The translations under genes and the position numbers were made by a program. The notes beneath the pieces were generated by a model that did no database searches, had not been told where the DNA came from, and saw only the letters and a program-made list of their open reading frames with translations. Positions 105 through 14,899 of a stretch of DNA of 14,899 bases are shown one piece after another; position 1 is the stretch's first letter, and each line of letters starts with the position of its first letter. Source of the DNA: Penicillus capitatus. Taxonomy: Eukaryota > Plantae > Chlorophyta. The stretch is taken from positions 1 to 14,899 of the forward strand of contig CBFGMF010000001.1 in assembly GCA_965649825.1 (NCBI GenBank), given 5' to 3'.

Positions 105-1822
105 TTAAAGACGTTGGATTTCTTCATCTGAAGGGATGTCTCCTAGATTCTGTGGTACAGTTGGCTGTGAGGACATTTCGATCTCGATCGTGTCATCGAG
201 CGCTTTGCCCATCGTTTCGACAGGGATAAAGTAAACGGCTGTCCAGGCAACCAGGCACAAAAGGGAAAAGAGTATTTCCACGACCGTTGCGTGACCTTCG
301 TCCACCAGATGCACGGCAAAGAGTGGCGCCGCCAAGCCGCCAAAACGCGAAAACGCATTGCAGATGCCCATACCGAATGTCCGAACGTCCGTGGGGAACA
401 GCTCAGGGGTATAGACGAAGAGCGCATTGAAGGAGCCCGTGATGGATGTCCGTGCAGCAAAGAGAAGGGCTGTCTGGTAAATATCGCTTCCACTGAGCGC
501 GAGTGGCCACAAAGACATCGCACTCGCAAAGAGAAAGATCAGCATCGTCCGGCGGCGGCCGAAACTGTCGATCGTGAAAAAACAGATCGTAAATCCGACG
601 GTCTCCGCCGCCGTATCGATAAAGATCTCAAGATAGTCGCTCTCTTCTAACTCCAGCTCGCCATCCGCCGAGCACTCTTCAGCTTCCTTGGACTGGAGCT
701 CGGTCGTGAGCAGGACGATGCCGTAGTACATCATGGCATGGACGAACCAGGTGACGAAGAGCAGCAGGGTCCGTCGGATCAGGGCACTGGACACCAGTCT
801 GCACACCATTCCCCGTTGTCACGTATTCGCTCAAAAGAGTGAGAAGAGTGACGCACTCGGCGAGGCCACGGAACATGCCAGACGTCACTTTTTTGACGTG
901 ATAGTTAAAGTTCTTCGGTTCTGTGCTGACCGTCGGCGGCGTTCGGACCATCAGTTTGCCGGCGGGCAACTCCTTGCCGTTCAACTTGGCAATCCGTGCG
1001 AGAACACGCTCGGCGCGGAGCTGTTTGCCTTTCAACGCCAGAAATCTCGGCGATTCCGAGAGGAAAGGAAAGAAGAGGAGGAGAACGACGAAGGGGATGG
1101 TGGAAATGCCAAGCAGATATCTCCACCCCAACGATGGCAGAACAGCCCAAGCCAACGCCGCTTCGGCCAAGGCACCGATCGTCCAGAACGCCTGTACCAG
1201 AATGGCAAAGCGACCCCTCTGCTCCGTGGGGACAAATTCCAGAAACAGACTGAAAGCCACGTGCAGGCCGCCGATGCCTAACCCCACCAGTCCACGAAAA
1301 ATCAACAGACCCTACGTCACTCTTTTGTCACACGTTGATAGAGAGAGCCGAAATCCGACGGTGTAGTTCGGGGCAGCCGCCGAGGCAAAGCCCCAGATGG
1401 CAGTGAAAATGGCCGGGGCGAGGAATCCGATCTTGCGGCCTTCGCTGTCTCCGAGGACACCCCAAAGGTATGCACCGATGAACATCCCCACGAAGACGAC
1501 GCTCGTAATCGCTCCCTTCTCCATCGAACTGAGATTCCATTCGCAACTTGCCTGTGGACAGACGACATTGTTGGTGGCCTCTCTGGCGTTGTGTTGCTGG
1601 CGAGGCCGTCCGTCTTACCGAAGGAGCCAGAAATGACAGTAACATCATTTCCATGGCATCACACATCCAGGCAAAGCCAACGTAGAGAAGGAGAAGCCAT
1701 TGGTATCGACCGACGCCTGCGGCGCTGAGAGCTTCGTCAATGGTGTAGGTCCCAATGGAAGAGGAGACGGGGGCGGCATCCGATGCCTCGGTACGGATGA
1801 GACGGCCTTCTTCTTTTTCCAT
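105..1822 (-). CDS. MFS transporter, SLC22/SVOP-like (organic cation/carnitine transporter 7-like), 514 aa, 4 exons
   Basis: Exons 1822-1619, 1551-1360, 1311-857, 798-105; GT-AG introns 1618-1552 (67 nt), 1359-1312 (48), 856-799 (58). Exon sum is 1545 nt, in frame to TAA. SVOP/OCT7-type motifs: IDEAL..AGVGRYQ, FAWMCDAMEMMLLSFLAP, GDSEGRK, ESPRFL, DSFGRRRT, VYTPELFPTDVRTFGMG, PVETMGKAL. Confidence 0.93.
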
Positions 1823-1859
1823 CTAGGACAGGCGCAAGGCACAGACAGACACGGACGAC
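1823..1859 (-). other. Possible 5'UTR intron ending directly at the MFS start codon
   Basis: Minus strand reads CAG|gtcgtccgtgtctgtctgtgccttgcgcctgtcctag|ATG. It is pyrimidine-rich, but at 37 nt it is shorter than the 45-67 nt coding-region introns. Confidence 0.35.
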
Positions 1860-1931
1860 CTGTCGCGTCTTGTCATGCTTGTCGTCGTAATGGAAGAATT
1901 TTGGCCATCTTTGAGGTGCTTTGCTTTGGCG

Positions 1932-3422
<1,491 letters not shown>

Positions 3423-3514
3423 CATATCCATCGTACCATCCAAAACGATCATCTATGGACGTATGACTTGCCGAGAGAATCGCCTTTGACGCTTCTCTAT
3501 CTGTTCAGCAACAA

Positions 3515-3519
3515 TGTAA
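3515..3519 (+). terminator. Candidate TGTAA (UGUAA) polyadenylation signal of GDH
   Basis: TGTAA about 93 nt after the GDH stop. UGUAA is the known near-upstream poly(A) element of many chlorophytes. Confidence 0.45.
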
Positions 3520-3984
3520 ACGTCACATCACATCCGCCGCCTCTCGGGCGTTTCTGGCAGATCATAGCTGCAGTGTATGTGGACCGTCGCTCTTCCATCT
3601 GCGAAACGCGTCGAGGTGTCGTCGCGCTGGGTCGTTTTTTCAAAGATCTCGCTTTTTGCAAGCAGTAACAATCGCTTCGAGATACAGCGTTAGCCAGTCA
3701 TGCCTTCGGACTATTCCTGCAACACTTTCGACAACAGAGGCGGTTTCCTTTATTCAGAACAAAAAAATCACCGCCTCTATCCATGAATCTCCCTTCGCAC
3801 CAAAGATCTGCCGCCTCTCGTGTCGCGATGTCCAGCGAAATCTTGATTCGAGTCCAAACGACGGAAAACGGCAACAGAAGCTCATCCGTCACGACCGATA
3901 TAAAACAAACGACAGGCACTGCACGCGCTCACAGTGCTTATTGAAGTTGAAAGAGCAAAGAATTATTGGTTCACGAGATATGCT

Positions 3985-4215
3985 TCACTTTGTGGAGTCT
4001 TTCCGTTTCTTCTCGGAGCTGTCTTTGGATGAGGCCTTGGCCACGGCACTGGCCTTCGATTTGGCTGTGGATTTTGTTCCGTCTGACGTTGCTTTGACCT
4101 TGCCGGTCGCCTTTGCCGTCGCCTTGCCAGACTTGGACGTCACCTTAACCTTCTTCGTCACCTTCTCCACGGTAGGGGCCGCAGCAATGCGCTCTGTCGG
4201 CAGCGACGCCAATTT
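3985..4215 (-). repeat. Low-complexity Lys/Ala/Thr/Ser-rich coding tail of GH17-A
   Basis: 76 aa after the last conserved Cys, with 19 Lys by hand count and short internal repeats (GKATAKATGKVKATS). Confidence 0.8.
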
Positions 4216-5577
4216 GCATTTCGTATCTGGCAAATCGAACGACGTCTTGCGTTCTCGCTTCTCATCGAAAACGCCGAGCTTGTATTCATGATCGCACAGA
4301 TCGCAGATGCCATTCTCGAAACTCGACAACTAGAATACGCAAGATAGAAATGCAAGCAAATCTAAAAAGGCGGCGGGCGTCCTTACGGCAAGATTCTTTT
4401 CCAGGCAGTTGGGGCAAGGATTCCAGACGGCACGCCAATCGCGATCGAAGGCAGAAGCGAGGTAGTAAGGACGCTCGTCTGCACCCTTGACGAATTCCTT
4501 GACATACTTCGTCGCCGCAGAGGATGACGCGATCGCCTGATAGCCATCCATATACACATCACTCTTCTCGACGGTTTTCTTTATGGACGCACCTGATATC
4601 CGTTTTTCTTTTCGGGAACATTGGGACAGCAGCGACGTCCGTTTGTCGGCCAGCCGGTCTCGCAGACCCAGACGTCTTTGGTGTAGAATTTTGACAGTCC
4701 AGTGGCACGCGCGTTGGCATAGGAGGCTGCAGCGATGCAGTTGTCCTTGGCGCGCAGCGGGCATTCTACAGGTCTCCCCTCTGTATACGGCATGATCTTG
4801 AGGCAGATAAAATCGACAGCCCTGGAGCAAACGAGGGGTATCAGCGCAAGTCTTTGCGTAGGAGGGTCGATCTACTCGGCGAGCGTGGCTCCGTGCTCCG
4901 ATTCCCAGACACCCCATCCTTCCGCCGTCGTCACCGGATGGGTCAGTTTGTGTTTGCGCAGAATCTTCTTGACGCGGTCGATGTAGCCGACCAACAGATC
5001 GACGTTGTCCTGGAAGAAGAGACAAGAGAGTTGGCGGCGGCGTGTGTGGCGGCTGGAATAGAGGACCAGGATTTTGGCATAGCGGTCGGTGCTGCCAATT
5101 CTGCCGTTGACGAAGGCATCGCTGCCGACGACGATAGCCTGGACGGCACCGGAATGCTTCTTCATGACCGATTCCATCATCTTCATCTCCTTCTCGTTGT
5201 CTTCTGCCGACGTTCCGAGAAAAACGCCGAGCAGAATGGTGACATTGAGCTTCTCTGCCTGTTCCATCATCGCCCACGTGGTCTCTGGACACACGGCAAT
5301 GTTGTAGAGCCGGATGCTCTTGACAAACGTCGCCATGATTTGGGTATCGATGATCGCCTAAAGTACAGAAGGTGTTCAGAGGCTTCGGTTGGCGGCTGTG
5401 GCGGCGGACTTGTTCTTTCGAGACGCAGATGTCTTCGGTGGAGAAAGCAAAGGGGTCGTAGGTGATTCCATACAGCGGTTTACAGCCGGTTGCTTTGGCA
5501 GGTGCAGCTCCCAGTGCACCGTACGTGCAGCAACTGATGACCAGAAGCAGCACAGCCAGACGGTCGAAGAATTGCAT
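3985..5577 (-). CDS. Secreted GH17-family protein, paralog A (438 aa); degenerate acid/base motif and Lys/Ala/Thr/Ser-rich C-terminal tail; 6 exons
   Basis: Exons 5577-5410, 5357-5067, 5009-4876, 4821-4593, 4536-4387, 4329-3985; GT-AG introns of 52, 57, 54, 56 and 57 nt. Sum is 1317 nt, in frame. Signal peptide MQFFDRLAVLLLVISCCTYGALG; motifs YGITYDPF, IRLYNIAVC, VVGSD (for VGNE), VDFIC, WVCETGWP, AFDRDW. Collinear with paralogs B-D. Confidence 0.88.
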
Positions 5578-6269
5578 ATTGTTTTGCGAGCGACGCCAGC
5601 AGCTCAAGCGCAAATGCGTTAAGGGACGAGCGGTCGACGTATCGCCACAGAAACTCGTTCTTGTGTGTTTGCCGGTTCTTTGGTGTAGGTGATATACAGG
5701 CGAAGAGCGAGTCTTCAAGAGATGTACGCGTTTGGCGGTGTCAAGAAAGGACGCCGAATTTCGATGCGTTGTTCAGCAGACTCGTCCGTCCACAAATGCA
5801 CGGTTGTACGGTACGCAGCGGTCAGCCATCGGTTCCTCTGCTCCAGCGGTTTTTGACTGGACGCCTGCGACGGTTGACCAAAACGCCTTGCCTATAGGAT
5901 ACCGTTCGACGCTGCCGATGGCGCCCTCTCGCATGACGCATCTTGGCCGCATCCACGGTGCAAAAGCGAGACGTGTGTGACGTTTCTGCGCGTTTCGACG
6001 ACCCGTCCACGACCGTCTTTGCTGAAAGAGTTCCTCGACGGCGATTTCGGCGTGAAGTTTCGTCCACTCAGCGACTAACCGTTTCATGGCGATTGCCGAC
6101 GGTATGAAAACACGAAGCGCGTGCAGGTGTTAACGATTCCTTGAAGACGATCGTGAACTGCGTCTGCCTTTCATTTCTTCCCACCCTCTGTCTTCGGTCA
6201 GACCCCAACCCAGAGGCGCGTATCTACCATCCACCACCGACTCCGAAAGCGACCGCTACCGTGCCTCGA

Positions 6270-7435
6270 ATGTCGGTCGTGAAATTCGTCCTCCTCACTG
6301 CGCTCATTGCGGTCATCTCTGCGACGCCGTCGTGTGAACCCAAGCCGTTCTATGGCGTCACCTACGCTCCCTTCTCTATGGACTATGCCAACATCTGTCT
6401 TCCGACCGAACGGGTAGGGACATCCGCGTGGCACTGATTGTCTCACCTGAGCGTGCGTGCGTTCGTGCGTGCTGCATAGGTCAAGAAAGATATGAAACTG
6501 ATTACGAAGGTTGCACACAGTATCCGCCTCTACAACATCGGCATCTGCTACGACGATACCATCGTCGTAATGGAAACGGCGAAGCGTCATGGCATGACGG
6601 TGACCATCGGACTCTGGATGGATGGCAACGATACGACGATCTTTGACAACGAGTTTGCCGTGCTCCCCGAAATGATGGAGAAATATGGAGACATCATCGA
6701 ATACGTCGTCGTCGGCAATGAACCCCTGAAGGTCGAAGAGATGAAAGTGGAAGACGTGATCGTGCGTTATCGACGTGTTAAGAAGTGGATGATCGCCAAC
6801 GGCTACTCCCATCCCGTGACGGTTGCCGAAGTCTGGCAGGCATGGGAATCGCCAGACGGATTCGAGCTCGTCAAAGAGGTCGATTTCCTATGTATGAACA
6901 TGCAGCCCTACTGGGAAGGGTTCTATGCCGAATGCCCCGACAACGAACCAGACTGCACGACGGCAGGTCGGCTAATCTCCTCTCTCCTGCAGAAATCGCA
7001 ACGCTGTCGTTCGTAGCGGACTATATCCATCTGAAGGCGGCGGGTTTGGAGGAGTTCTTTCAGAAGAAGATCGTGCTTTGTGAGTCTGGCTGGCCGACAC
7101 AAGGCGAAGCCTGTTGCAGTGGTATCGATGATCCCGTGATCCCTGGCTTCCATGCCGTTCCTTCCGTCGACAACGCAGTCCACTTCGTCCACAACTTCGT
7201 CTACCGTGCGAAGGAGCGAAATGTAAAGTACTACTTGCATGCGGGTATTGACGACGACTGGAAGAAGACCTGGGATCCCTGCGACGAATGCAAGGGCACG
7301 GGCGTTTCGAAGTTTGGTGGGGAGGAATGCGATTTCTGTGTTGTGGATTATTACTGGGGCATGTACACATACGATCGCACGTACAAACCGCACTACGTGT
7401 TGCCAGAAGCGGCGGCGCAATGCGATGTTCATTGA
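6270..7435 (+). CDS. Secreted GH17 beta-1,3-glucanase/glucanosyltransferase-like protein, paralog B (349 aa), 3 exons
   Basis: Exons 6270-6413, 6480-6966, 7017-7435; introns 6414-6479 (66 nt) and 6967-7016 (50 nt, with CTAAT branch-like motif). Sum is 1050 nt. Signal peptide MSVVKFVLLTALIAVISA; catalytic VVGNE (Glu codon 6720-6722) and LCESGWP (7082-7084). Confidence 0.93.
6451..6472 (+). repeat. Imperfect (GCGT)n microsatellite in GH17-B intron 1
   Basis: gcgtgcgtgcgttcgtgcgtgc. Confidence 0.5.
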
Positions 7436-7722
7436 GTGAGATGCGCATTTTTGTTTTCTCTCTCTTTTCTGCACATCTGAATTGATTTCGAACTTGATTC
7501 CGAATGCACGAGGTGATCTCGTTTGCTTTTCTGAACTATTTCATTCAAAGCCGTGTAGCATTTTGCTATCGCTAGCAGAAATGGCACAGGGCTTGAAACT
7601 GATCTAGCATAATCTGTCACGTCGAATATCTTATGCGAGATAACCTTCGCACAATAATGTACACGTCTAAATTCTTGTCTGAATTCAGCAGACACAATAA
7701 AGAGGTCTCTCTGTGACAGCTA

Positions 7723-7727
7723 TGTAA
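7723..7727 (+). terminator. Candidate TGTAA polyadenylation signal of GH17-B
   Basis: First TGTAA I found downstream of the 7435 stop, ~290 nt away in an AT-richer tract. Confidence 0.3.
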
Positions 7728-7744
7728 TGGATGCTTCCATAAAC

Positions 7745-8090
7745 TTATCGCACTGAGATTGAGAGGATTCGGCGGATGGGTTTGTCGAGAAGGGCAGGGT
7801 CGGCATCATGCGTGGCTGTTCCTTCAACGGAATCGTCAGAATCGTCCTTCGTCTTCTCGAAGGAAGAAAACGAACAGAGCGCGTCTTCACTTTGCCACCC
7901 GTGCATACGCGATTCCGTGCTCGTCGACGAAGAGGCCCGGCTTGAGAGAACCGTTTCGCCGGCTAGCAGCATCTGACCAGCCAAGAGCAGCAATGGCCTG
8001 GAAGGGCATTCGAAGGTCGCCGGGTTATATGCTCGACGGCTCTTCTGCCTTGTCGAGCATGCTCTGTTCGTATCGGCAACGAAAGAACAT
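7745..8090 (-). CDS. Speculative small spliced hypothetical protein (50-83 aa)
   Basis: ATG 8090 follows an acceptor-like tttacacag. A GC-AG intron at 8048-7998 gives MFFRCRYEQSMLDK-AIAALGWSDAASRRNGSLKPGLFVDEHGIAYAR; an optional intron at 7898-7856 adds KTKDDSDDSVEG...ISVR. No recognisable family, and the model needs non-canonical sites. Confidence 0.18.
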
Positions 8091-8659
8091 CTGTGTAAAG
8101 GGTATAGTGAGTGGCTTCGTAGACCGCGCCTATCGGTCCGTTCATCTCATGTACGCGTTTTGCGTGTAAGCAACGTGCGAACGGACCGTCCTTTTTGGTC
8201 CGCTTCTTCCCGCGGTTCGTGTGTTCGTTTTGGCCGAACGTGTTGTGAGGCAGTGGACAAGATGGACAAATGGCTTGTTTTGCCAGCGGGCGTCATATTT
8301 AACCACACGCGGCCTGTCTTATGACGGTCGTATCTATCATTCTCTAACAGGAGTTTGTCAAGAAGAACATGATGATCCAGCTGCGAACGCGTTTCTAACG
8401 GCTGTCACCGAACAATTGGCGGGTCGACGGGCAGCCAGCTGGACGACGAGGGCGAAGTTCGTACGTTCAAAGGCACCTAACCGTCAAGGCCTGAGCTCAA
8501 AGGCAGACCACCCGCCTTTGCAAAAAAGTACTTTACCTGAAGAAACTTACCGATTCGGCACAATCGTTAAAAGCTATACGAGTGGTCTCTGCTTTCCGAG
8601 CGTCGGATTCTTCTTTACGTTGTCGAAATCTCTTGGCATCTCTCGTAGCTAAACTCGAG

Positions 8660-8707
8660 GTAAGGGGTTCATCTTTGGCGCATCGATGGAGCCGTCGGTC
8701 TGTGTAG
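8660..8707 (+). other. Probable 5'UTR intron (48 nt) ending directly at the GH17-C start codon
   Basis: CTCGAG|gtaagg...tctgtgtag|ATGATG: strong donor, typical length, and no in-frame ATG seen in the nearby upstream exon. Confidence 0.6.
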
Positions 8708-9857
8708 ATGATGTCCATACCAACGATGGTCTTTTTCGCCCTCGCCGTGGCGGCGGTGTCCGCGACGGATTCCTGTACGCCGAAGCGCTTCTACGGCGTG
8801 ACCTATGCACCGTTAGCATTAGACTCCACCAATATCTGCCTCCCTGTCGAGCAGGTCAGGTCCGTCGACAACGACGTCCAGCGTCATATGTCCCCGTGCA
8901 GGTCAAGGAAGATATGGAAAAAATTGCTCAGCTCGCCAACAGCGTGCGTATTTACAATATTGCCGTGTGCTACGAAAACGCCATTCAAATCATGGAGAGC
9001 GCCAAGGCAAACGACATGACGGTTCTCATGGGTCTCTGGATGCAAGAAGGGGACCCATCGGTGTTCGAGAACGAATTTGAGCACTTGCCTGAATTTATGG
9101 AGAAGTACGGTGACATCATTGAGTATGTCATCGTCGGCAATGAGCCCGTCTTCATCGAAGAGATCGATGTCGATGAGGTCCTTGCGGCCTACAACAAAAC
9201 CAGAGCCTGGCTCAAGGAACATGACTACCCACACAAATCCTCCGTTGCCGAAGTGTGGCCCGTCTGGGAGACCGAAAGCGGACTGAAGCTCGCCAACGCG
9301 CTGGACTTTGTCTGCATGAACATGCAGCCATACTGGGAAGGCTTCTTCGCCAAGTGCCCAAGCAACGTCACGGACTGCACACCCGCAGGTTTGCCCATCG
9401 CACGCGTCTTGCTCTCTGAGTGCTGTGCGCCTTAGGCGAGTACATCCACTTGAAGGCGGAGGGTCTTCAGGGTTACTTTGGCAAACAAGTCGTTCTTTGC
9501 GAGGCAGGCTGGCCAACGCTCGGCGAGCCCTGCTGCAGTGGCAGTCGCGACAATGCCCTCACTGGCTTTCATGCCGTTCCTTCTCTCGAGAACGCCGCCG
9601 CCTTTGTGCAGAACTTCGTCGGCATCGCACAGCAACGCGAGGCCAAATACTATCTGCACACGATGTTCGACGAGCAATGGAAGCAAATCTGGGATCCCTG
9701 TGACGAGTGCAAAGGCCAACAGGTCTCCAAGTTCAGCGAAGACGAGTGCAACGGTTGCATTGTTGATTACAACTGGGGGTTCATGTCTTTCGAACGCGAG
9801 GTCAAGAGCGCATACGTCTTGCCAGAGCCTCTGCCTCAATGTCACTATAGCAACTGA
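8708..9857 (+). CDS. Secreted GH17 beta-1,3-glucanase/glucanosyltransferase-like protein, paralog C (351 aa), 3 exons
   Basis: Exons 8708-8854, 8902-9388, 9436-9857; introns 8855-8901 and 9389-9435 (47 nt each). Sum is 1056 nt. Signal peptide MMSIPTMVFFALAVAAVSA; IVGNE (9142-9144) and LCEAGWP (9501-9503). Same intron positions as B. Confidence 0.93.
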
Positions 9858-9890
9858 GAGAATAACCGCCGCAATTTTCGATACGAACTG

Positions 9891-9985
9891 TTTGATTGAT
9901 GATCCCGAATCCTATCTGACATAGCCTTAGTGACACTGTCTCCTTTACCGCTGGATTTGATTGGATCACGCATTTGATTGATCAC
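9891..9985. repeat. Three short near-identical motifs TTTGATTG(G)AT(CAC) in the GH17-C/PHT4 intergenic region
   Basis: tttgattgat 9891-9900, atttgattggatcac 9955-9969, atttgattgatcac 9972-9985. Confidence 0.5.
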
Positions 9986-10310
9986 CTGGTTAGCTATTGT
10001 TTTCGATGCCTCGATGCATCTCCTGCCTTGGATACGTGGCTACCAAATAAATCGTGAAGATGGCTCCTGTTCAAAATCTTCCTTTGTTGCCCGATAGACT
10101 AGACCAGTACGGAGAAGAATTTCGTGACGGCCTCGCTGTATGAAGGCGTCGTGAACAATAACGGATGGGATGTCGACACCCGTTTAAGAGAAATTCTTGT
10201 CAAGAATACTCCACGCTGTGCTCCTTTGATGCATCGCAGGGCATCATCGCTGTTCTTAAGGCCTCGGCCGTCGATCGCATTTCGACCATTCTTTTCCTTC
10301 ATTTCAGGAG

Positions 10311-12439
10311 ATGCGGTGTCGTCTCGTCCTTTCATCGACCTCCAAGAGCAGAGGCGCACGATGTTCCAAACAGACGGCCAAAAAAGACGAAAGAAACGGC
10401 GGCGATGTTGGGCGGGTGCATTCGAGGTAGGCAACGCCACACGTTTGCCCCTCTGTGCCAACCCTCGTTCGCTCAGGGACTTCCTGCGACATAGAGCACG
10501 ATTTGCCGACCGATCGCTAACGGCCACACGCGTGCGTTGCCTCTTAGTTGGATATCGGTGAGACAGGTTGCTGCAGATAGCGCAGATTACTCTCTGTACT
10601 TCCAACCGAACACCGAGCGATTCTCCCTCGAGCAGCAGTTCGGCATCTGAGGTCTCGTTCTCGAGCCTTGCTCATCGGCCTGATCCTCTGCGTCTTACTC
10701 AGAGTCTCTTAACCAATCTGAATCCTTCATCGACGAGCGAAGAGAGCTTTTCGCCGGCGCTGTGCAAAGAAGACGTGCAGATCGCGACAAGGGAAACGAC
10801 GGAGGTGTGCTGGCGCTGTATGTGGAGTATCGTGAGATGTACACGCGTAGGCCATCGATAGTGTGACGTCTGGGTCGCAGCTATGGCTGAATCGTCGATG
10901 GGTGATCGTGGGACTGTGCTTCGTCGCTTTCATGTTGTGTAACATGGATCGGGTGAACATGAGCATCGCGATTCTGCCGATGGCGACGGAGTTCGGATGG
11001 GACAGCCAGTTGAAAGGCATCGTGCAGTCCTCCTTCTTCTGGTGACCTTCTGGGCAGCTTCCCATCGACGATCACGCGGTTCGACAGGGGTTACCTTCTG
11101 ACGCAGATCCTGGGCGGCATCTGGGCCGATAAGTTCGGAGGGAAGCGCATTCTGGGTGCGGTTTGCAGATCGGAGAGGCGACAGACAGTGCGTATGTTTG
11201 TGCAGGCTTTGGTGTTGTCTGGTGGTCCATTGCGACAGCGGTGACGCCGTTTGCTGCACATCTCGGATTTCCAGCCCTCCTGACAGCGAGAGCCTGTATG
11301 GGAATCGGCGAGGGCGTTGCGATGCCGGCCATGAACAATCTTCTCTCCAAGTCTGTTGTCGCATCTCTCCTTCGCCGCCGCCTCTGCAAGAGGATACGAT
11401 GCACTGTCTCAGGTGGATACCGGTACAAGAGCGATCGAGGTCTTTGGCCTTCGTCTACAGCGGTATGTTTGTGGGGTCGATTCTGGGATTGGCCATTTCG
11501 CCGCATCTCATTCAGCTGCTACAGTGGCCTTCTGTATTTTTCATCTTTGGCTCATTCGGAATCGCTTGGCTGATTTTTTGGAATCAATCGGCGTCGAGCT
11601 CGCCGCAAGAAGACCCCCACATCAGCGACGCCGAACGCGATTACATCATCAGCGGAAAACAACAGAACGTCTGTCCGACGATGGCGTTTGGCCTGGATTG
11701 ACGCCTTGTGTGTTCAGGAACCGACAGTGGAGATTCCGTGGGGCAGAATCCTGTCGAGGATCGAAGTGTGGACGATCATCATCAGCCATTTCTGTCACAA
11801 CTGGGGTACCTTTATCCTGTTGACATGGATGCCGACCTACTACAACCAAGTCCTGGGATTGGACCTCATGAAATCGGGATTCTTCTCTGTCTTACCATGG
11901 ATCACGATGGCCATCGCGGCGAACATCGGCGGATGGCTCGCCGACAGCCTCGTCCCACGAATCGGCGTGACAAAAGTCCGCAAACTTATGCAAACCGTAA
12001 GCCCGCCGCCACGCGCCGCCATCCCTCGGATGACAGAGGCCTGTCTGTTGCAGATTGGATTTCTAGGTCCAGCACTGTTCTTGACGCAGCTCAGCAGAGT
12101 CCATTCTGTCCCGATGGCTGTCCTGTGCATGATGTGCTCACAAGGACTGGACGCTTTTAGCCAGTCTGGACTGTACTCCAATCACCAGGACATCGGTCCC
12201 AAGTACTCCGGCGTGCTTCTCGGTCCGTCATCCTTTGTCCTCTTCAGCACCTCGAGTCTTTGCTTTTAGGCCTGTCCAATACGGCAGGAGTGTTGGCTGG
12301 AGTGTTCGGAACATATGTGACGGGGCGCATTCTGCAGTACGGTTCGTGGGATCAAGTGTGGCACGTGTCCGTGACGCTCTACATCGTGGGCGCCGTGATT
12401 TGGAACCTATTTGCCACAGGAGAACGCATACTTGACTGA
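10311..12439 (+). CDS. PHT4: PHT4/ANTR-family (SLC17-like) plastid anion/phosphate transporter, PHT4;1/PHT4;4-like, ~558 aa, ~10 exons
   Basis: Exons 10311-10426, 10477-10531, 10577-10804, 10851-11041, 11088-11155, 11206-11350, 11413-11668, 11718-11996, 12054-12222, 12270-12439. Sum is 1677 nt, in frame. Motifs CNMDRVNMSIAILPM, QSSFFWGYLLTQ, GEGVAMPAMNNLLSKW, HFCHNWGTFILLTWMPTYY, SQSGLYSNHQDI, WNLFATGERILD. The Ser/Arg-rich N-terminus resembles a transit peptide. The first two exons and the start (alternatives 10165, 10361) are uncertain. Confidence 0.94.
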
Positions 12440-12851
12440 AAACCCGTCGATCGTCGTGCAGACCAGTTCCAAGGCTTTTTTCGCACATGAACTGGCACAC
12501 GCTTTTCTGTTTAACGTATGGAAACAGCTTTGTGCAATATCTTGGCACTAGGCAAAGTAAAAGCGTCCATTTGGCAATCGCCTTGAATTCTGACGACGGC
12601 CTCAATTAAGGGTCATCAACACCACAGGTGGCACATATATGGTCCTCCGCGTAAATGCCGGAAGCAGCTCGTGGCAATGCTGCGTCTGGAAGCTGTCTGT
12701 CAGCGAGACAGCGAACTCAAGGTTGAAGTTCAGCCCGCGCCTGCCGTGCAGCGACCTCCTATTTCTTGACTGGCTATCTAACCCACTTCGGTCAACTTTT
12801 CGCAGCGTTTAAGTTTACGGCACCGAGCGTGCACAACGGTGATTAGTAAAT

Positions 12852-13991
12852 ATGAGAGTTCTCGCCGCGGCTTTTCTTTTTCTTTGTGTGGCGCTGGGCG
12901 CACTGGCAGGGGAATACCGCGCCGGACAGTATCCATCGTCCACGACGCTGTTCGGCCTGACGTATTCCCCCTTTAACTTCAACGCATCGAGCTTCTGCTT
13001 ACCATCGGCGCAAGTCCTCACAGATATGGACATCATTCATCAAACATCCGACCACGTACGCACCTACAGTCTAGCTGCCTGTCGAGAAAACGTTGAGGTC
13101 CGACGCACGTACTCCTTACCTTCTATCCATATGCTCGCCCTCCTTGTGTAGACCATCCTCACATACTGCCAACAGAACAGCATGCGTGCGATATTGGGAC
13201 TCTTTCTCTCTGGGGACACAGCGGCCAACGATGCAGAGTTAGGAGGATTGGAAGGCATCTTGGCGACGCATGGCGACGTGATTGACGCGATCGCCGTCGG
13301 CAACGAAGTGCTCTTCGCGCGACAGGTATTACGATCTCCGCACCGTGCGTTTGTCTGACGGCGGGATGTGGCGCAGCTGACATTGCAGCAGCTGATTGGG
13401 TATGTCAAAGGAGCCAAAAGAATCGTGACGGCATCTCAGCACGACATACCGGTGTCAACGGCCGAAGTCTGGCCAGTGCTCGAATCTTCCGTCGGTCCTG
13501 ATCTGGTGGCCGAACTGGACTTCATTTGTATGAACATGCAACCCTTCTGGGAAGGATGGGATATTGTCTGTCCGCCGAGCTCAAGTGGATGTCTCTCAGC
13601 TGGGAAGTACGTGCACGCCAAGGCCGAGGGCCTCGAAGACTATCTGAAAAAACCCGTGTGGATTTGTGAGTCGGGATGGCCGACAGAAGGCGAAAGATGT
13701 TGCCAGGGACGTGACAATGCGAGAGATGGACTCTTGGCTGGACCAAGCGAAGCGAATCTAACCATTTTCCTTGAGGAACTGGTGAACGGTGGGAAACAGG
13801 TGAATCGCCCAACGTATATCCACGCCATTTTTGACGAAGACTGGAAACGCATCTGGTCACCCTGCGGTACCTGTGAGGGACTGAGTACAGGAGTGAACGA
13901 TCCCTCCTGCAATTCGTGTGAACTGGATTATCATTTCGGTATCTATGAGTCTGATCGCACTCCGAAGAAGGGAGTCACTCTTCCTGCTTGA
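12852..13991 (+). CDS. Secreted GH17 beta-1,3-glucanase/glucanosyltransferase-like protein, paralog D (344 aa), 3 exons
   Basis: Exons 12852-13097, 13152-13325, 13377-13991; introns 13098-13151 (54 nt) and 13326-13376 (51 nt). Sum is 1035 nt. Signal peptide MRVLAAAFLFLCVALGALA; FGLTYSPF, VRTYS, AVGNE (13305-13307), WICESGWP (13668-13670), IFDEDWK, HFGIY. Confidence 0.92.
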
Positions 13992-14089
13992 CGCACGCAA
14001 ACAAACGACGCTTCTTTATGAACGTCAAAGAACGCTGCTCCTTTTTGGAAGGACCTCCAAAACTAGATGATGATTTTTATTTTTTGTTT

Positions 14090-14186
14090 TGTAACCGTGG
14101 AGAGAAGATGTCTCTTGTGACAAACGATCGTGTCCATGTCGACACGGCGATGAACCTTCATGTAACCTCAAGCAAACGAAATGTAA
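14090..14186 (+). terminator. Three candidate TGTAA polyadenylation signals after GH17-D
   Basis: TGTAA at 14090-14094, 14161-14165 and 14182-14186, preceded by a T-rich tract at ~14074-14090. Confidence 0.45.
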
Positions 14187-14899
14187 CAAAGACACTCTTA
14201 GCCAACAACAGATCTTGAAAACGCGAATCGTATCTCGCCATCTCCTTCTATGGCAAAGGAAAAAGCGTTCTTTACCTCGTTAGCATGAAGTGACCGATGC
14301 CAGCTAGAGCATCGCGCGTTGTGTTTGGAGTGATTGTCTAACTGTTAGCTGATCCGAATGCGAAAAGGTACTGACTGGAGACAACTTCTCTGTCTGATGC
14401 TGCTTCGGAGTCCGTTTCGAGATATTCGCTTGTGCGTGGTGTGACAGGCAGTGTCTTGACAGACAACACAAGGAAGTGACGTTTTGCCATCGGAGCTGTA
14501 CGTAACGATGACTTACTCTGCCTTTTCAAAGACACAAGCCTACATACACGATGTCCATAACAGTCACTGTCTTTCATTACTCTCGAGCGATTCAGCTGCT
14601 CAAGAGCACAAGCACAACAACCCATCCTTAATCAGAACACAGCACGCCTGTTTGTTAAACACGCAGAAAAGACAGAATCGGAAAAGACAGAACACTCCTC
14701 AAGGCTTCCAGGATTCAGGTCGAATACAACCAAGCATGTCTACGCGATTTGGAAGAGATTGTTTCGAGGTGTCGTGTTCACACATCGACAATTCTCGGAG
14801 TTCTACAGCTAGAAATAAAACGGAACTGCAGTTGCCATACAACAAAGGACGCTTCGCTTGAATCGGTCATCGGAATTGAGACTCAGAAAAGGCGTCAGC

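Follow-up and report, generated by a model that had tools for sequence, protein, structure and literature searches.

The GH18 chi-lectins, concanavalin B and α-Klotho retain a glycosidase fold and its sugar groove with the proton donor substituted, and they are conserved as functional binders. In the plant myrosinases, which belong to GH1 of clan GH-A, the acid/base glutamate is replaced by glutamine, the nucleophile is kept, and ascorbate acts as the base. An inactive paralog can also serve as a decoy, as described for PsXLP1 and its partner PsXEG1, GH12 proteins of Phytophthora sojae (PMC8960721). Within GH17, the β-1,3-glucanosyltransferase RmBgt17A of Rhizomucor miehei uses Glu99 as proton donor and Glu189 as nucleophile (PMC11005184). 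Here, we analyze by computational means a GH17-like gene, called A, that is located on contig CBFGMF010000001.1 of the green alga Penicillus capitatus (assembly GCA_965649825.1). The whole stretch of 14,899 nucleotides, referred to as the window, is eukaryotic in content, its GT-AG introns being short (47-66 nt), and it carries four GH17-like genes, A-D.

By its sequence, A is a member of an old clade of GH17-like secreted proteins that is conserved in siphonous green algae of the bryopsidalean type. In this clade, the general acid/base glutamate has been replaced and the nucleophile has been kept. Judged from the sequence comparisons and a structural model, A is most likely a secreted, non-hydrolytic β-1,3-glycan-binding wall protein, that is, a pseudo-glycosidase, and we put the probability of this reading at roughly 0.5.

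The acid/base position

On the minus strand, the codons agc (5123-5121) and gat (5120-5118) of gene A encode Ser135 and Asp136, in the context AIVVGSDAFVNG (AIVVGSDAF). The same column reads VVGNE in B (aat gaa, 6717-6722), IVGNE in C (aat gag, 9139-9144) and AVGNE in D (aac gaa, 13302-13307). In the HMMER, MAFFT and hmmalign alignments alike, Asp136 falls on Glu99 of RmBgt17A and Glu252 on the nucleophile Glu189. The acid/base column is Glu in all of the 111 canonical relatives tabulated (103 broader and 8 close), while a Ser in front of it occurs in 16 of the 103 broader ones, including the active RmBgt17A (VGSE, Ser98).

The preliminary description of this locus had interpreted the change from GNE to GSD as loss of the Asn-Glu motif. 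The alignments indicate that this holds for one half of the change only: the replacement of Glu by Asp is unusual, and that of Asn by Ser is an ordinary GH17 variant that carries no weight. The assignment of the Glu in this motif as the clan GH-A acid/base is borne out, as Asp136 aligns with the proton donor of RmBgt17A and directly follows predicted strand 4. On this alignment, the Glu at the end of strand 4 by which GH17 is recognized is missing in gene A, which has Asp136 there, and its orthologs have Asn or Gln. Several other features pointed out earlier are found here as well, namely the nucleophile codon gag (4661-4659) within WVCETGWP, the replacement of the paralogs' CMNMQP(Y/F)WEG by CLKIMPYTEG, and the 14 cysteines shared with the paralogs. 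Of the 16 Cys that gene A encodes, two belong to the predicted signal peptide, which leaves 14 in the mature protein; each of B, C and D has 14 as well.

A clade without the catalytic glutamate

The preliminary description had presented the loss as an event in gene A. It is instead a property of a whole clade of siphonous green-algal proteins, known from Caulerpa and from other transcripts, in which at least five lineages besides Caulerpa are represented. The full-length orthologs of A are 46-59% identical. At the acid/base site, VVGNN is found in three to four transcripts (P0001-P0003, L005) and VGNQ in two Caulerpa lentillifera proteins (P0004, P0005), and shorter fragments from other species have GSD (P0027), GTD (P0026) and GND (P0054). 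Throughout the clade, this position thus holds D, N or Q, and the nucleophile Glu never varies. A position that is always polar, and not always a carboxylate, would fit a role in hydrogen bonding better than one in proton transfer.

In a neighbor-joining tree the clade is monophyletic with 100% bootstrap, and its stem, with a length of 0.107, does not exceed the stem of the canonical B/C clade (0.122). The nearest named GH17-like relatives come from Caulerpa lentillifera (P0004, P0005), Ostreobium quekettii (P0010), Bryopsis sp. KO-2023 (P0015) and Haematococcus lacustris (P0016). It is to be noted that word-indexed homolog searches gave only 5 and 8 relatives, and that an exhaustive search of representatives was needed to reveal the family; the profile search with the A clade retrieved 1710 relatives. 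Scanning metagenomes for the locus yielded one additional GNN transcript (L005) and none with genomic context from other species.

Two further observations concern the surroundings of this clade. Among the approximately 130 sequences tabulated outside it, a single one, P0089, has Asp at the acid/base position (VVGNDVLAR), with the nucleophile intact. A sister group in this Cys-rich algal family (P0013, P0014, P0041 and P0063) displays the opposite pattern, the acid/base being kept (VVGDE) and the nucleophile lost (KICNTGWP, IICNTGWP, VICAAGWP); P0013 and P0014, which come from complete transcripts, pair with 99% bootstrap. With one group lacking the nucleophile and the other the acid/base, disabled paralogs would have arisen at least twice in the family, and either route appears to have been tolerated and retained.

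Fold and family assignment

Searches with phmmer against the PDB match A to 4WTP (E 1.4e-7) and 8AKP (E 9e-4), to be compared with E 4e-19 for B against 4WTP. An AlphaFold (AF2) model of A was built on an alignment of 106 sequences; a model from the six clade sequences alone had a predicted local distance difference test score (pLDDT) of 43 and was discarded. The model has a pLDDT of 89.2 and a predicted template modeling score of 0.87, and it matches the (β/α)8 barrel of GH17. The top four PDB matches in Foldseek are all GH17 structures (4WTR, 4WTP, 8AKP and 6FCG, E 2e-16 to 3e-14), the best being 4WTR with E 2e-16 and a template modeling score of 0.84 normalized to the target. The comparison with a GH17 template that the preliminary description had proposed as a check thus supports membership of the fold. 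In the model, Asp136 is the first residue past predicted strand 4 (128-135), and Glu252 lies within predicted strand 7 (248-253).

With a threshold as permissive as E ≤ 10, the Pfam profile PF00332 still gives no match to A, P0001 or P0004. The scores of B, C and D, at 20.6-28.0 bits, stay just under the cut-off of 28.2. With the A clade missed, its proteins at present go under the label hypothetical, and with the paralogs below threshold as well, standard pipelines will give this label to the whole algal family. Considering the predicted fold, the sequence and the nucleophile, A is a GH17 derivative, and it should be named "GH17-like" and not a GH17 glucanase.

Other changes in the active site

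The roles of the contact residues in RmBgt17A were taken from the literature (PMC11005184) and mapped onto the family by alignment. On the glycone side most contacts are preserved in the clade and in A itself: Phe38 (−2/−3 stacking) is kept as Tyr and Tyr135 as Trp, and Glu75 and the nucleophile Glu189 are kept as such. At +2, Glu158 is kept as well. The equivalents of Phe38, Glu75, Tyr135 and Glu158 and the nucleophile are invariant within the clade.

Other positions differ, and these changes go beyond those in the preliminary description. The equivalent of Tyr102 (+1 platform) is Val, Ile or Ala in the clade and Val139 in A. Trp157, which contacts O6 of the −1 sugar and is part of the +1 platform, is replaced by Tyr in the clade and by Thr211 in A, where Thr and Ala are polymorphic between two assemblies. 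The equivalent of Phe154 (+2) is Asn in the clade and Met208 in A, and that of Glu235 (−2, O6) is Arg or Lys in the clade and Arg306 in A. In RmBgt17A, transglycosylation is abolished by Ala at Tyr102 or at Trp157 (PMC11005184). All clade members also share a 10-residue insertion after strand 4, modeled in A with pLDDT 79-92, in which Ile143, Gly144 and Tyr149 are invariant.

In RmBgt17A, Asn152 and Glu99 both make contact with O1 of the −1 sugar. The position of Asn152 holds Asn in the Caulerpa proteins, Glu in the GNN group and Lys206 in A, where Asp136 is paired with Lys206. By alignment, the nearby Glu that the preliminary description had considered is thus present here in the GNN orthologs and absent from A. 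In the GNN orthologs L001, L002, L004 and L005, Asn stands where RmBgt17A has Glu99, and Glu stands where it has Asn152 (CLEMNPYYEG); this reciprocal swap of two O1-contacting residues may represent a relocated catalytic acid. With Lys206 at the partner position, A would be the least likely member of the clade to have such a relocated acid.

The charge is changed as well. The catalytic domain of A has a net charge of 0 and its tail of +14, while B, C and D have −19 to −28, which makes A overall some 35-40 charge units more positive than any of them. Charged low-complexity tails are present in all full-length clade members (A, P0001-P0005). Those of the Caulerpa orthologs are also basic, and in those of the GNN orthologs a basic block precedes a long acidic tail.

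Selection, polymorphism and expression

For three close GNN ortholog transcripts, the ratio of non-synonymous to synonymous substitution rates (dN/dS; Nei-Gojobori, catalytic domain) is 0.10-0.15, at dS of 0.7-1.2. Between A and its orthologs dS is saturated, and dN/dS is unusable. The evolution of the orthologs, for which the preliminary description had suggested this very calculation, is hence not neutral, and purifying selection has acted on the A clade since its acid/base was lost.

The same locus is present at 99.77% identity in an independent assembly of the species (L003, a 702-kb contig of an ENA assembly), with identical GSD codons. The two sequences differ at 34 positions, 18 of which are in gene A. 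The introns of A have nine differences in 276 nt (3.3%) and its exons nine in 1317 nt (0.68%), the exons thus being about five times less polymorphic. Five of the exon differences are synonymous and four are non-synonymous (S15G, T211A, V311I and E430V). As a separate observation, the divergence between the haplotypes is distributed very unevenly along the locus: with a single exception, the 34 differences lie in 1159-5970, and the 8.9 kb that contain B, C, an MFS gene and D (5971-14871) are identical.

Two sequencing-run assemblies and one metatranscriptome contain complete mRNAs of A orthologs, free of introns. Together, the intact open reading frame, the constraint on the exons and the transcribed orthologs under purifying selection argue that A is not a pseudogene, as the preliminary description had argued from the intact frame, the introns and the cysteines.

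Mechanistic interpretation

We now consider what the protein might do. The reading that best accommodates the observed residue changes, clade, fold, purifying selection and ortholog transcription is, in our view, the glycan-binding wall protein introduced above. According to it, the clade would have given up the general acid/base Glu of strand 4, with Asp, Asn or Gln taking its place, and would have rebuilt the acceptor-side (+1/+2) platform by exchanging the Tyr102 and Trp157 equivalents and inserting the 10-residue loop. The nucleophile Glu and most of the sugar contacts on the donor side (−1 to −3) would have been retained. A glycan chain could then be held in the retained glycone subsites, and with the leaving group not being protonated, cutting would be inefficient. 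The basic tail (+14) might attach to anionic wall polymers. The ligand, the binding without turnover and the attachment are all putative.

Some points speak against this reading. The strict keeping of the nucleophile Glu and of its partner Tyr210 is equally expected of an enzyme that is still catalytic, and Asp can in principle act as a weaker acid/base. Moreover, the Glu at the Asn152 position in the GNN orthologs could be a relocated acid/base, in which case the clade may be enzymatic.

The most serious alternative, which we regard as possible and clearly less probable than a binding protein, is that A is an enzyme whose mechanism or substrate has changed, such as a retaining glycosidase or transglycosylase working without an acid/base from the protein on strand 4. 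Its substrates could be donors whose leaving groups are good, or glycans of anionic (sulfated or uronic) character; it could employ an external or substrate-borne base as in myrosinase, or could have its catalytic residue relocated. This would explain why Glu252, Tyr210 and the residues of the −1 subsite are invariant across a clade of 46-59% identity. The replacements are, furthermore, themselves conserved (Asn for Phe154, Tyr for Trp157, Arg or Lys for Glu235, and the inserted loop with its invariant Tyr149), which looks like re-specification and not like decay, and the reciprocal exchange in the GNN orthologs and the far more basic active-site region and overall protein of A compared to the paralogs are also in line with it. 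However, no single alternative acid is conserved throughout the clade, as the variation at the Asn152 position demonstrates, the acceptor-platform residues required for GH17 transglycosylation are gone, and a candidate activated substrate is not known.

A more specific version of this idea, which we consider doubtful, is that the clade consists of natural retaining β-1,3-glycan transglycosylases without a strand-4 acid/base, with the proton transfer moved elsewhere or outsourced to an anionic wall substrate. If that were true, the clade would build or remodel the unusual β-1,3-xylan or glucan walls, or the wound plugs, of siphonous green algae.

Slightly less likely again is the option that Asp136 is itself the acid/base and that A is an ordinary, perhaps slower, β-1,3-glucanase or glucanosyltransferase. 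A carboxylate is indeed kept in A and in at least three other sequences in or near the clade (P0026, P0027 and P0054), and the remainder of the barrel is intact in the model. On the other hand, close orthologs with Asn or Gln, which are unable to donate a proton, are under equally strong constraint, A lacks the equivalents of Asn152, Tyr102 and Trp157, and Asp is seen only in P0089 among the relatives outside the clade. A shorter side chain at the acid/base position of clan GH-A usually lowers the rate by orders of magnitude.

A role as decoy or partner of the active paralogs, in which A would soak up an inhibitor or binding protein of B, C and D, or regulate them, and would be co-expressed with B from the 692-bp region between them, is quite improbable. 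The head-to-head arrangement of A and B and the precedent of PsXLP1/PsXEG1 would agree with it, but the identity of A to B, C and D is no more than 31-33%, its charge and the surface of its active site differ so much that it would be a poor mimic, and no inhibitor is known in the system.

Finally, a decaying pseudogene or an assembly error, to which the lost catalytic residue and the additional lineage-specific changes K206, M208 and T211 might point, is very improbable and was rejected, being contradicted by the intact 438-aa frame with its five canonical introns, the same codon in the second assembly, the low exon polymorphism and the dN/dS of the clade. An explanation in terms of misalignment was likewise rejected.

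The preliminary description had left two interpretations, a binding pseudo-enzyme or a changed mechanism, and these are partly supported by the sequence comparisons and the model.

Locus and gene models

The features of the window are collected in Table 1. The splice junctions of the gene A model all align without gaps with the intron-less ortholog transcripts (5/5), which agrees with the intact frame and five clean introns noted earlier. Intron 2 of A (57 nt) is in frame and without stop codons, and gene callers of the prokaryotic type read through it (fragments P0006 and P0017). That it is truly non-coding is shown by a 1-nt deletion at 5039 in the L003 haplotype.

Genes A and B are placed head to head, and the region between their start codons may be a shared bidirectional promoter. 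In the tree, the sister of gene D is CAD7699139.1 of Ostreobium quekettii. The closest named match of the neighboring glutamate dehydrogenase is from Coccomyxa (61% identity), followed by land plants.

Table 1. Features of the window, with positions counted from its first letter.
Feature	Position	Strand	Remarks
Gene A, GH17-like, 438 aa	5577-3985	minus	spliced model; start codon at 5577, stop 3987-3985
Gene A exons	5577-5410, 5357-5067, 5009-4876, 4821-4593, 4536-4387, 4329-3985	minus	spliced model
Gene A introns, five GT-AG	5409-5358, 5066-5010, 4875-4822, 4592-4537, 4386-4330	minus	
Gene A, predicted signal peptide, residues 1-24 (MQFFDRLAVLLLVISCCTYGALGA)	5506..5577	minus	hydrophobic N-terminus, assigned by eye from the sequence
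Gene A, Ser135-Asp136	5118..5123	minus	position of the GH17 Asn/Ser-Glu acid/base motif; aligns to RmBgt17A Ser98-Glu99
Gene A, Val139	5109..5111	minus	position of RmBgt17A Tyr102
Gene A, clade-specific 10-residue insertion after strand 4 (NGRIGSTDRYAKIL)	5067..5108	minus	
Gene A, K206-I-M208-P-Y210-T211	4782..4799	minus	
Gene A, Glu252 in WVCETGWP, codon gag	4659..4661	minus	nucleophile position; aligns to RmBgt17A Glu189; invariant in the A clade
Gene A, FDRDWR	4432..4449	minus	Arg309 at the Lys/Arg238 position, Arg306 at the Glu235 position
Gene A, C-terminal tail, residues 377-438	3988..4173	minus	Lys/Ser/Thr/Ala-rich, net +14, pI 10.4
A/B intergenic region, 692 bp	5578..6269		between the start codons of A (5577, minus) and B (6270, plus)
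Gene B, canonical paralog, 349 aa	6270..7435	plus	VVGNE and VLCESGWP; introns 6414-6479, 6967-7016
Gene C, canonical paralog, 351 aa	8708..9857	plus	introns 8855-8901, 9389-9435
Gene D, canonical paralog, 344 aa	12852..13991	plus	introns 13098-13151, 13326-13376
MFS sugar-type transporter gene	~108-1822	minus	neighbor of the GH17 array
NAD(P) glutamate dehydrogenase gene	~2082-3419	plus	neighbor of the GH17 array
Second MFS transporter gene	~10900-12436	plus	between GH17 genes C and D

Comparison with known systems

Caulerpa, Bryopsis, Ostreobium and other siphonous green algae consist of giant single cells, and both their unusual β-1,3-linked wall polymers and their rapid wound plugging are poorly understood at the molecular level. 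Gene A provides a concrete candidate for a protein that binds or organizes wall glycans or, less probably, for an enzyme with a non-standard mechanism. Its clade, taken together with the sister group without nucleophile, constitutes a natural experiment on the transition from glycosidase to binder. In the literature that we searched, there is no prior description of a natural GH17 pseudo-enzyme or of a clade of them.

Among the solved structures, RmBgt17A (PDB 4WTP, 4WTR and 4WTS) is the best match of A in both sequence and fold. The two have in common the (β/α)8 barrel, the Ser before the acid/base position, the ETGWP nucleophile motif, the PY-x-EG segment and an Arg at position 238. A differs from it by having Asp for Glu99, Val for Tyr102, Lys for Asn152 and Thr or Ala for Trp157, and also by the 10-residue insertion after strand 4, the 14 Cys, a Cys-rich C-terminal subdomain and the basic tail.

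The canonical algal paralogs, i.e. B, C, D, Ostreobium quekettii CAD7699139.1 and Bryopsis sp. GMH43218.1, show 31-36% identity with A. Like A, they carry a signal peptide and a C-terminal CxxC subdomain, and they match it in Cys pattern and genomic neighborhood. In contrast to A, they have VGNE, an aromatic residue at the Tyr102 position (except B and P0015), the Trp of PYWEG and FD-x-x-WK, are strongly acidic (−19 to −28), and lack the tail and the insertion.

PsXLP1 is similar to A in that an inactive paralog, the inactivity of A being putative, is encoded beside active ones (PMC8960721). In PsXLP1, however, a truncation has removed a catalytic Glu, and the protein still closely resembles its active partner, while A has diverged deeply from B, C and D. 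PsXLP1 also comes from a pathogen, while A comes from a free-living or endolithic alga.

With the myrosinases, the A clade shares the clan, the retained nucleophile and an amide at the acid/base position (Gln in Caulerpa, Asn in the GNN orthologs). A itself has Asp and a remodeled acceptor side, and the algal proteins have no known activated substrate or cofactor. The chi-lectins, concanavalin B and α-Klotho, which correspond to the function that we favor for A, belong to different families and folds, GH18 uses substrate-assisted catalysis, and binding by A is putative. Inactive glycosidase paralogs are well known, and the A clade extends this known theme and overturns nothing.

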